Shown here one piece after another: positions 12,314-14,842 of a DNA stretch of 25,820 nucleotides. The stretch is from Macrostomum lignano. Taxonomy: Eukaryota. Under the pieces are notes generated by a model. It was not told where the DNA came from, did no database searches, and worked only from the letters and a program-made list of their open reading frames with translations. The stretch spans positions 1 to 25,820 of the forward strand of contig NIVC01005114.1 of assembly GCA_002269645.1 (NCBI GenBank), written 5' to 3'. A program made the position numbers and the translations under genes. Position 1 is the first letter of the stretch, and each line of letters starts with the position of its first letter.

Positions 12314-14842
12314 TCAGCTCATGGAAGAGCACACGTAGGTGGGGCTGCCCATGGCTGCCAGCACCTGGTCCAGCCAAAGCAGCGGCCCGTTCAGATGCAC
12401 CTCAATCCAGCAGGGCGTCGCCGTGACGAGCTGGCGCCTGTAGTCGCTGCCCCAGCCCTTAACGAAGGCGATGCGGATGGTGCACATCTTGGTGAGCGCG
12501 TACACCTCGTCGAAGCCTTGCTGGGCGCTCTGGCGCAGCTGCGAGCCGAAGTCAGCGTTAGAGAAAACACACAGATTGCAGCCGGGAGGGATGCGGCACA
12601 CGGTGGCCGCGTGCCAGTTCTGCCTCAGGTTGCCGTTAGGCGACTGCACGAAGATGGGGCTGTCCGACAGGCACTCCACGTGTACCTCACCGTTGACGTA
12701 GTACAGGCCGACACCACTACCGATGGACCTGCGGGTGGGAGCGACGTCTGCCTGTCTGCCTGTTTGTCTGTCTGCCTGCCTGCCTGTCTGTCTGTCTGTC
12801 TGTCTGTCTGTCTGTCTGTCTGTTTGTCTGTCTGTCTGTCTGTCTGTTTGTATGTTTGTCTGTCTGTCTGTCTGCCTGCCTGCCTGTCTGTCTGTCTGTC
12901 TGCCTGTCTGTCAGTCTGTTTGTCTGTCTGCCTGCTGCTGCCTGTCTGTCTGTTTGTCCGTCTGTCTGTCTGTCTGTCTGTCTGTCTGTCTGTCTGTCTG
13001 TCTGTCTGTCTGTCTTAGTGTCTGTCTGTCTGTCTGTCTGTCTGTCTGTGTATCTGTCTGTCTGTCTGTCTGTCTGTCTGTCTGTCTGTCTGTCTGTCTG
13101 TCTGTGTATCTGTCTGTCTGTCTGTCTGTCTTAGTGTCTGTCTGTCTGTCTGTGTATCTGTCTGTCTGTCTGTCTGTCTGTCTGTCTGTCTGTCTGTCTG
13201 TCTGTCTGTCTGTCTGTCTGTTTGTCTGTCTGTCTGTCTGTCTTAGTGTCTTAGTGTCTGTCTGTCTGTCTGTCTGTCTGTCTGTCTATCTGCCTGCCTG
13301 CCTGCTGCTGCCTGTCTGTCTGTTTGTCCGTCTGTCTGTCTGTCTGTCTGTCTGTCTGTCTGTCTGTCTGTCTGTCTGTCTGTCTGTCTCTGTCTGTCTG
13401 TCTGTCTGTCTGTCTGTCTGTCTGTCTGTGTATCTGTCTGTCTGTCTGTCTGTCTGTCTGCCAGCCAATGTAACAGCCCCAGCCCGTCAGCCCAGCTGCA
13501 AACCTGCGGGTCTGCTCCACGGTGAGGCTGCGGTTCACATTGGACAGCAGGCCCAGGCAGAAGCGGTTCCGGCCGCTCGGGTCCGTGCCGCCGTCCACGG
13601 TGATGAACTGGGAGGAGGCATGGTAGGCGTCGCCGACCCTGGCCGCCAGCTCATAGTAGTGAACGGAGCACCAGTGCTCAGGCTCGGTGTAGTGCACGCT
13701 GTACAGCGGCTGCTGCGGCTGCTGCTGCACCTGGCCAGGCAGCTGCTGCTGAGGCGGGCTCAGCGCGCCTATTCGGCCGCCCTCGGAGCCGGCACCGTCG
13801 TTGTCCTCGCTCATGTACACGCTGGGCGACGCGGCGTTCGGGTCGTCGGCGGGACCTCCGGCGCTGCTGGCGCTGCCCATCCCGACTCCGCTGCTGCCGG
13901 CGGGAGTCCCGGGCCGGCAGACCAGCACGGGGTCCTGGGCCGGCGAGCACAGCGGCAGCCGGGTGTAGTGCTGCGGGTTCACGCACAGCTCGGTCTGCGG
14001 GGGCGTTGGATGGGCTGTTTGTGCTCTTTCAACTGAATTTTAATAAGTCAAATGTGCAATTTAAAAGGCTTGAAAGTGTTTCAGGATTAGGGGTAAGAAT
14101 AGAAAATAGGGAGAGTAGATAGGGAGATAGGGAGAGAGTAGATAGGGAAATAGGAAGAGTAGATCGGCGGATAGAGAGAGACTAGATACGGAGATAGGGA
14201 GAGAGTAGATAGGGAGATGGGAGACTCAAGAGAGTAGATAGGGAGATAGGGAGAGAGTAGATAGGGAGATGGGAGACTCGAGAGAGTAGATAGGGAGATA
14301 GGGAGAGTAGATGGGAGATAGGGAGAGTAGATGACAGGAACATGAGCGGAACAGCAGTGTAGAAGATCAGCTGCCAGTTGCCGCAGAGCTCAAGCAGCTG
14401 TAGAAGCCGCTCTGCTCACCTGAGTCCGGGCCGTGTAGGGCATCTGGCAGTTTTCAAGCGGCCGCAGCTCTTGAGCGGACTGCAGGTCGGGCCAGCGCCA
14501 CAGCCGGCAGGCGGTCACGTGACCAGGCTCCGGGTCGCCCTGAGCAACCGCAGCTGTGACGCATCCGGAATGCGGGCTGGCCTCGCTAACCGCCCGCTCC
14601 AGGGCTTTCACCAGCTCTGGTCGGCGAAGCCGCTTCACCAGCTGCTTGACCAGCTTCTCGCCCGACACTGAGCCGCTGCCGCTGGCATCGAGGCCCGGAC
14701 TGACAGCGCCAGGCCGCACCAGGCTGACCAGCCGCTTCACCGAGGATGAATGGGGAGCGCCCCCGATTAGGCTGGCTAGGGACTGCGGGAGTCGGTTGCC
14801 ATTTTTGTTGTGAATGCTACTGACAGTAGCTAGATGGTTCAT
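12314..14842 (-). CDS. SMAD2/3: Receptor-regulated Smad of the Smad2/3 (TGF-beta/activin) class with divergent MH1; exons 14842-14420, 13994-13504, 12728-12314; ~442 aa
   Basis: MH1: VKRL...[13 protein letters not shown]...[21 protein letters not shown]...|[12 protein letters not shown]2: [13 protein letters not shown]...TVDGGTDPS...[12 protein letters not shown]...TRR|[29 protein letters not shown]...[12 protein letters not shown]...[10 protein letters not shown]-terminal SSMS phospho-motif. L3 loop YRRQ is Smad2/3-type, not the YHRQD of Smad1/5/8. GT-AG introns 14419-13995 (phase 0) and 13503-12729 (phase 2) join into one open frame of 1329 nt. Confidence 0.95.
12746..13460 (+). repeat. (GTCT)n microsatellite, ~715 bp, occupying nearly all of Smad intron 2
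   Basis: Directly visible; GCCT, GTTT, ATCT and TTAGT interruptions. Confidence 0.98.
14105..14335 (+). repeat. Purine-rich degenerate repeat (GGGAGATAGGGAGAGAGTAGATA-like) in Smad intron 1
   Basis: Visible ~21-23 bp degenerate units. Confidence 0.85.

Follow-up and report, generated by a model that had tools for sequence, protein, structure and literature searches.

A Smad2/3-class Smad of the flatworm Macrostomum lignano whose MH1 domain has lost the DNA-reading hairpin

Contig NIVC01005114.1 of the flatworm Macrostomum lignano (GenBank assembly GCA_002269645.1) was analysed over its full length, positions 1 to 25,820, a stretch hereafter called the window. Its minus strand carries a Smad gene of the Smad2/3 class, which is intact, transcribed and maintained by selection, and in which every base-reading residue of the MH1 domain has been lost. 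The gene model was built from three collinear minus-strand tblastn blocks, obtained with a human SMAD3 query, together with the splice signals. The GC content of the coding sequence (CDS) is 0.67, rising to 0.84 at third codon positions. The features of the gene are as follows.

12314-14842, minus strand: Smad CDS, three exons, 1329 nt, 442 amino acids
14842-14420, minus strand: coding exon 1, from ATG to CAG/gtgagc, 141 codons without interruption; N-terminus and most of MH1
13994-13504, minus strand: coding exon 2, from ccgcag/ACC to CAG/gtttgc; end of MH1, linker and beginning of MH2
12728-12314, minus strand: coding exon 3, from ccgcag/GTCC to TGA (12314-12316); remainder of MH2, L3 loop and CSSMS tail
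13995-14419, minus strand: intron 1, gtgagc...ccgcag, 425 nt, packed with tandem repeats of 20-52 nt
12729-13503, minus strand: intron 2, 775 nt, largely (CAGA)n as read on the coding strand
13956-14659, minus strand: MH1 domain (Pfam PF03165), residues 62-154, E 5.6e-21, spanning intron 1
12389-13679, minus strand: MH2 domain (Pfam PF03166), residues 247-418, E 5.7e-62, spanning intron 2
14621-14635, minus strand: basic helix-2 motif KRLRR, residues 70-74
14519-14563, minus strand: hairpin site, codons C94 (14563-14561) to H108 (14521-14519), a 15-residue acidic loop
12407-12457, minus strand: L3 loop, 17 residues (396-412), Arg kept and Thr replaced by Leu
12317-12331, minus strand: C-terminal CSSMS, residues 438-442, the SSXS receptor phosphorylation motif, with the stop codon directly after it

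The modelled protein is matched at 100% by the M. lignano GenBank protein PAA46017.1. The deposited CDS has the same splice junctions as the model and an unbroken loop, so the gene model has transcript support; transcript assemblies, both RNA-seq-guided and de novo, were together with TransDecoder the only basis of the Mlig_3_7 GenBank annotation (PMC5730564). The deposited CDS is 5'-partial and starts at LIGG, and the true 5' end is therefore uncertain; the ATG region is conserved in Mlig016086, a diverged paralogue of the same species described below. The deposited CDSs of all copies are likewise 5'-partial, and a possible trans-splice acceptor, ccgcag/TCC, lies at about 14783, just ahead of SLASLIGG. 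On the locus carrying the paralogue (L001, 5880-5950) the start MSISATFSS..., corresponding to MNHLATVSS... in the window, is one base out of frame with SLAGLIGG at an A6-7 homopolymer, probably by an assembly indel. Public records name these sequences only 'hypothetical protein' or 'Mothers against decapentaplegic homolog', and searches of the Macrostomum literature for Smad, Smad2, activin and the locus names brought up no paper describing them. A smad4-like transcript of M. lignano is known.

Smad3 reads the GTCT element in the DNA major groove through R74, Q76 and K81, located on the beta-hairpin of MH1. The Cys-to-His segment at this site is 22 residues long in canonical receptor-regulated Smads (R-Smads) and 15 residues long here, and all three base-reading residues are absent. 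An earlier note on this DNA, made from the sequence alone, had described a 15-residue segment at 14519-14563 uninterrupted by any intron; both its coordinates and its peptide proved exact on the minus strand. Its claim that the loop is 7 residues shorter and lacks R74, Q76 and K81 was borne out by alignment to canonical activin/TGF-beta-class R-Smads (AR-Smads) and by phmmer comparison with MH1 domains in the Protein Data Bank, in which a 7-residue gap fell exactly at the hairpin. Among the 219 near-full-length Smads collected, the Cys-to-His spacing was 22 in 136 (162 by another tally), and a spacing of 15 or 16 was found only in M. lignano proteins.

The hairpin is replaced by an 11-residue stretch rich in Pro and acidic residues. 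As read directly from the sequence, the net charge of the segment shifts from about +3 in canonical proteins to about -2 here (Asp, Glu). Both M. lignano paralogues have other residues in place of K81, G82, L83 and P84 (Smad3 numbering), which are invariant in 19 canonical AR-Smads of animals as distant as vertebrates and parasitic flatworms. Given the acidic charge of the loop, its sequence makes a classical major-groove contact by this MH1 very unlikely. The 45 nt encoding C94 to H108 are contiguous within the uninterrupted open reading frame (ORF) of exon 1; therefore, no intron or extra exon lies inside, and alternative splicing could not bring the hairpin back. The extra exon that the earlier note had named as a refuting outcome was not found within the window. 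A candidate hidden hairpin exon, the sole hairpin-like tblastn match elsewhere in the window (25773-25814, E 1.1), was rejected as a chance match that hits a stop codon, the loop DNA being contiguous. A HMMER search with MH1 against 1.84 billion unnamed cluster representatives detected no hairpin-shortened MH1 outside M. lignano. Near the top of that search stood P0121 (650 aa) and P0123 (962 aa), each with two tandem MH1 domains and no MH2, the former fused to an apparent C2H2 zinc-finger region and the latter to an apparent PHD-type Cys-rich region.

Outside the hairpin, the protein retains what the earlier note had listed as kept: the four zinc ligands C94, C132, C145 and H150, which align with C64, C109, C121 and H126 of Smad3, the KRLRR helix, the SSMS tail, and an MH2 domain matched by the Pfam profile over its entire length (positions 1-174 of 174). 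We take KRLRR to correspond to the KKLKK nuclear localisation signal of Smad3, its function being assumed from Smad3. In sequence, MH2 shares 67-70% identity with the Smad2/3 MH2 domains of known structure. For MH1, an AlphaFold2 model from a 47-sequence alignment gave a predicted local distance difference test (pLDDT) score of about 90, and of 78 in the block with the loop; in place of the protruding hairpin, the model has a strand, an 8-residue coil and a helix. By Foldseek, this MH1 model superposes on the Smad3 MH1 (5od6_A) with a template-modelling (TM) score of 0.80 and a root-mean-square deviation of 2.9 A, and on the Smad2deltaE3 MH1 (6h3r_A) with a TM score of 0.81. The MH1 fold is thus predicted to be kept despite the loss of the hairpin.

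By sequence, the window protein is a Smad2/3-class R-Smad. In full-length searches and in searches with a flatworm AR-Smad profile, the best named matches were all Smad3, Smad2 or Smox. Assignment to the inhibitory Smads (I-Smads) was considered and ruled out by the SSMS tail and by these matches. MH2 identity was 66-68% to canonical AR-Smads (67% to human SMAD3) and 62% to one BMP-class R-Smad (BR-Smad); for comparison, identity to human SMAD3 is 90-95% among canonical MH2 domains and about 80% among those of neodermatan flatworms. In a neighbour-joining tree the two M. lignano paralogues formed a long branch beside the neodermatan AR-Smads with 56% bootstrap, and the pair shares with the latter the residues RVGD, WCSV.YYE, NRFCLG and NWH. 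These data fit an origin of the pair from a flatworm Smad2/3, the support being weak.

The trimer interface and the phosphoserine pocket retain D and R of TDPS..RFCLG, K333R, the R of YRRQ, and WLDQV. The L3 subtype residues are Arg and Thr (YRRQTV) in AR-Smads versus His and Asp in BR-Smads. The Smad2/3-type L3 loop claimed in the earlier note stands with respect to the Arg of YRRQ and fails at the position of Smad3 T388, which is Leu (YRRQLV) in both paralogues. The claim of a Smad2/3-class R-Smad likewise holds by the best matches, the SSMS tail and YRRQ, and had overlooked a loss in the linker. The linker PPxY of AR-Smads is the site for the WW domains of Smurf and NEDD4L; it is absent here, with SPSVY (residues 197-201) in place of the canonical TPPPGYxSEDG and SPAAYMSEDN in the paralogue. 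At positions invariant among the 19 canonical AR-Smads, both paralogues are altered at 23 of 138 in MH2 and at 8 of 34 in MH1, mostly to the same residue, which points, from the sequences, to a burst of change in this clade followed by conservation.

The gene is present in several genomic copies. Near-identical copies are Mlig024882g1 (L003), Mlig000640g2 and Mlig017485g1 (L002). L003 has a clean ORF with intact splice sites, and its introns and flanks are 93-96% identical to those of the window. Its CDS differs at 9 sites, of which 7 are synonymous; the two non-synonymous ones fall in codons 15 and 17, within the poorly conserved N-terminus. From codon 18 on, the difference is 7 synonymous to 0 non-synonymous, for which the neutral probability is about 5e-5 (about 25% synonymous sites, Nei-Gojobori site counts). 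L002 is frameshifted, yet over 9.1 kb its identity is 99.3%, and it differs by 38 indels but just 6 mismatches, an imbalance indicating long-read indel errors. The more distant paralogue group, Mlig016086g1/Mlig013934g2, is about 65% identical overall and 84.5% in MH2, ends in the tail PSSIS, and has the same hairpin-less loop, CVTATVGDSADPEPLH. As the loop is found in the independent copies L003 and L002 and in the diverged paralogue on L001, it is not an assembly artefact, and as both paralogue groups carry the lesion, the loss of the hairpin is older than their duplication.

The window gene was then compared with the paralogue CDS rebuilt on L001 by the Nei-Gojobori method, with the following ratios of non-synonymous to synonymous substitution rates (dN/dS).

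Whole CDS: dN/dS 0.24 (dS 1.13, dN 0.27)
MH1: dN/dS 0.29
15 loop codons: dN/dS 0.16
Linker: dN/dS 0.32
MH2: dN/dS 0.13

The core of the new loop, DPEP.H, is conserved between the paralogues at a dS of about 1.1. Judged from these sequences, both lineages have been under purifying selection since the hairpin was lost, including MH1 and the new loop. The pseudogene outcome, for which the earlier note had proposed a dN/dS analysis, was not borne out by the overall value of 0.24.

Several differences in gene structure were observed between the copies. Intron 1 is 425 nt long in the window and 377 nt in L003. In the two paralogues it is placed 13 nt apart (14420/13994 in the window, 6281/10214 on L001), in phase 0 after PYTARTQ in the window and in phase 2 within PY/R in Mlig016086, the coding length from PY to LCVNP being identical. 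The second intron of Mlig016086 lies in the linker and not in MH2. An ancestral intron just 5' of the hairpin, which also marks the SMAD2/3 exon boundary, is missing from both paralogues; in insect fragments it is seen as exon starts at RVRP.... Intron 2 is 775 nt long in the window and 295 nt in L003 (5208-5502), and is bounded by a 10-bp direct repeat, ACCCGCAGGT, that supplies both the AG/GT donor and the CAG acceptor. It is missing from Mlig016086, in which the sequence is contiguous, ACCCGCCGGTCG (L001, about 12460). From its sequence, intron 2 looks like a lineage-specific gain by an insertion or repair event with a target-site-like duplication.

Whether the species also has a canonical Smad2/3 bears on how the gene is understood. 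In the full-length search of annotated proteins, only the hairpin-less AR-Smads were listed for M. lignano, though a canonical one could have been missed. With the flatworm AR-Smad profile, no canonical Smad2/3 of M. lignano or planarians appeared among the best 120 (cut-off 657 bits), a weak negative since scores are dense there; the ranking began with 16 neodermatan clusters, continued with the M. lignano proteins and ended with generic AR-Smads, of which those of cnidarians stood at 657 bits. These searches would miss a canonical copy that is unannotated or whose score falls slightly short of the cut-off. The homologue searches run gave no orthologue from another Macrostomum species or a planarian. 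The earlier note had called the gene a paralogue of a coexisting canonical Smad2/3, and no such partner was found among the annotated M. lignano proteins by these searches, which could miss one. It is a tentative and rather doubtful proposal that M. lignano has no AR-Smads other than the hairpin-less genes, which form two paralogue groups with at least five annotated loci.

We propose, with a probability of roughly 60%, that the protein is a functional AR-Smad unable to read DNA itself, activated by receptors and dependent on Smad4 and partner factors. According to this proposal, an activin/TGF-beta type I receptor would phosphorylate SSMS, the protein would form a trimer with Smad4 through its conserved MH2 and enter the nucleus, and, being unable to read GTCT or GGCGC itself, it would be placed on target genes by Smad4 and partner transcription factors. 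Such a mode would be like that of full-length vertebrate Smad2, insect Smox and the MH1-less AR-Smads of Echinococcus. The kept MH1 scaffold would then probably have functions other than DNA contact, for example in autoinhibition of MH2, nuclear import or the docking of cofactors.

A number of points weigh against this proposal. Loss of DNA binding, phosphorylation and Smad4 binding are all things that we infer from sequence and model. The MH2 part of the AlphaFold2 model was of low confidence, and nothing was concluded from it. Among the Logan RNA-seq contigs in the protein collection, none held this protein, so that the evidence of expression is that of the published annotation method. Since the PY motif is lost, control of turnover would differ from that of Smad2/3, and the T388L change together with the 23 replaced invariant MH2 positions could alter the specificity for receptors or partners. 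Finally, a canonical Smad2/3 could coexist in the same genome.

The earlier note had offered two mechanisms, a decoy and signalling through partner factors only. As a decoy or dominant-negative, the protein would compete for type I receptors and/or Smad4, form inert complexes, and damp the signalling of a separate canonical Smad2/3. The lost hairpin would suit this role, the missing PY motif could stabilise the protein, several gene copies could raise its dose, and the faster change at otherwise invariant MH2 positions, including T388L in the L3 loop, points the same way. However, a sink needs no MH1 scaffold, zinc ligands or import helix, all of which are under purifying selection (MH1 dN/dS 0.29); no canonical M. 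lignano AR-Smad to be antagonised appeared in the full-length search or among the best 120 of the profile search; and the known AR-Smads with a disabled hairpin or without MH1, namely Smad2, dSmad2 and EmSmadA/C, transduce positively. A decoy is thus the weaker of the two mechanisms and improbable on present evidence, and signalling through partners only, as in Smad2, is favoured.

Direct binding to DNA in a new mode or with a new specificity, through the remodelled loop, helix 2 or another MH1 surface, is a more unlikely alternative still. The conserved MH1 fold, zinc site and basic KRLRR helix are compatible with it, as is the retention of DPEP.H between paralogues over a long synonymous distance, but the loop is acidic, Pro-rich and 7 residues shorter, it lacks the three base-contacting residues as well as the invariant KGLP, and we know of no MH1 that binds DNA without the hairpin. 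That the gene is a pseudogene or an artefact of assembly or annotation, as frameshifts in L002 (Mlig017485g1) and in some UniRef models and the highly redundant, repeat-rich genome might suggest, is highly improbable, for the L002 pattern fits long-read errors, ORFs are clean and splice sites intact both in the window and in L003, dN/dS lies far below 1, 7 of the 9 differences between copies are synonymous, and the annotation is transcript-derived.

The rest of the window contains a few other coding regions.

7771-8271, minus strand: N-terminal exon of SIP1/gemin2 (PF04938, E 3.5e-9), annotated in L002 too
360-941, minus strand: WSC-domain ORF (PF01822, E 1.2e-13)
24022-25236, plus strand: 404-aa single-exon ORF with a glycosyltransferase DXD region (PF04488, E 5.8e-8)
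23439-23921, minus strand: weak HTH_32 match (E 0.006), possibly a transposase remnant

Tandem repeats are abundant along the contig (4258-5650, 6448-6754, 8431-9054, 9778-10672, 11482-12220, 14938-15075 and 15297-15518), among them a 1.4-kb GA-rich tract with a GC skew of +0.8, a 43-bp unit repeated 14.5 times and 33/61-bp units repeated 27 times. Immediately 3' of the Smad gene a 20-bp unit is repeated 37 times, and just 5' of its start codon a 32-bp unit four times; the lengths of the tandem repeats vary among the genomic copies. Within intron 2 of the Smad gene, a (CAGA/GTCT)n array (12746-13460) comprises about 180 units of the tandem CAGA box/GTCT motif bound by Smads. On L001 a (TCTG)n array stands just 3' of the stop codon of the paralogue (12921-13202), and an unrelated CAGA/GTCT array lies elsewhere in the window (2174-2834). 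Because this unrelated array suggests that the repeat is common in the genome, its placement in the Smad intron is probably a coincidence. The array could also act as a binding sink for Smad4 or BR-Smads.

R-Smads are described in textbooks as DNA-binding transducers, yet contact with DNA has been weakened or lost several times within the AR-Smad branch. The M. lignano gene offers a natural experiment in which only the hairpin was removed and the rest of MH1 stayed under selection, by which the role of the hairpin can be separated from those of the scaffold, and the established RNA interference and transgenesis of M. lignano make the question testable in vivo. If the hairpin-less genes were the sole AR-Smads of this animal, the entire AR-Smad branch of a free-living flatworm would work without contact between R-Smad and DNA, as a loss independent of those in vertebrate Smad2, holometabolan Smox and EmSmadA/C; this would speak for direct DNA reading being generally dispensable for AR-Smads, and for the MH1 scaffold being kept for another selected function. 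If no canonical Smad2/3 coexists, a regenerating bilaterian would run activin/TGF-beta signalling wholly through Smad4 and partners. The practical gain is modest: a better annotation than 'hypothetical protein', and a caution that binding to Smad-binding elements or CAGA boxes is not to be presumed for flatworm Smad2/3.

AR-Smads that gave up their own DNA contact are already known from at least three lineages. In vertebrates, exon 3 of Smad2 blocks DNA binding, and the protein signals via Smad4 and partners such as FoxH1 or Mixer (PMC11063908). Like the M. lignano protein, full-length Smad2 is an AR-Smad with an MH1 fold, an MH2 domain and an SSMS tail, and its DNA binding is disabled at the hairpin, as is predicted for M. 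lignano. Unlike it, Smad2 keeps the hairpin residues, which are blocked by a 30-aa insert just N-terminal to them, and its deltaExon3 isoform restores binding; in M. lignano the deletion or replacement affects the hairpin itself, an alternative exon has no space to fit in, the linker lacks the PY motif, and identity in MH2 reaches only about 67%. Drosophila dSmad2 carries an insert corresponding to Smad2 exon 3 and is still an active transducer. In M. lignano, 7 residues net are deleted and KGLP is lost; the lesion is not an insert of the Smad2/dSmad2 type with the KGLPH end retained. Though the lesion differs, the M. lignano protein may work like the family of Smad2 with exon 3 and dSmad2.

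In our own alignment, the RxxGRxQV core is missing from about 45 holometabolan Smox orthologues, which keep [RK]KGLPH. These Smox/dSmad2 proteins are, like the M. lignano protein, AR-Smads with a replaced hairpin core, for example RVRPNAELGNIQQQ or RSKPAAGENL. They keep K81, have loops of 21-27 residues and an MH2 about 93% identical to human SMAD3, whereas the M. lignano proteins have lost K81-G-L-P, their loop is acidic and 15-16 residues long, and their MH2 is fast-evolving. Smox/Smad3 proteins without the canonical core were observed in Coleoptera, Lepidoptera, Diptera, Neuroptera and one ant (RVRPNAELGNIQQQRKGLPH, RVKPNDNVINGQYRKGLPH, RSKPAAGENLRKGLPH), comprising many of the entries P0010-P0117 (for example P0012, P0018, P0060 and P0084); the canonical hairpin is retained in ticks, crustaceans and Daphnia. 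One Logan contig, P0047 (458 aa), encodes a full-length AR-Smad with the hairpin replaced by CVTVPRTRACGESNSMKKNVPH and KGLP lost, and with a canonical MH2 and an SSMS tail.

Among flatworms, EmSmadA and EmSmadC of Echinococcus multilocularis, the only AR-Smads of that species, have no MH1 and are phosphorylated by TGF-beta type I receptors. As the M. lignano protein would be to judge from its sequence, they are flatworm AR-Smads without direct DNA binding; in contrast to them, M. lignano has an MH1, and it is under purifying selection. The other neodermatan AR-Smads (Paragonimus, Spirometra, Mesocestoides, Schistosoma) keep the canonical hairpin. DAF-14 of Caenorhabditis elegans is R-Smad-like, very divergent in sequence, and acts without a DNA-binding MH1, having none. 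A DNA-reading MH1 is thus absent from DAF-14 and would be absent from the M. lignano protein, which differs in retaining the domain. Smad6/7, which can antagonise signalling, have a degenerate N-domain and share the lack of a canonical hairpin, but they have no SSXS tail and a different L3 loop, unlike the M. lignano protein with its CSSMS. What is new in M. lignano, set against all of these relatives, is the combination of a precisely deleted and replaced hairpin with an MH1 kept under selection, the loss of both K81-G-L-P and the PY motif, and a fast-evolving MH2.

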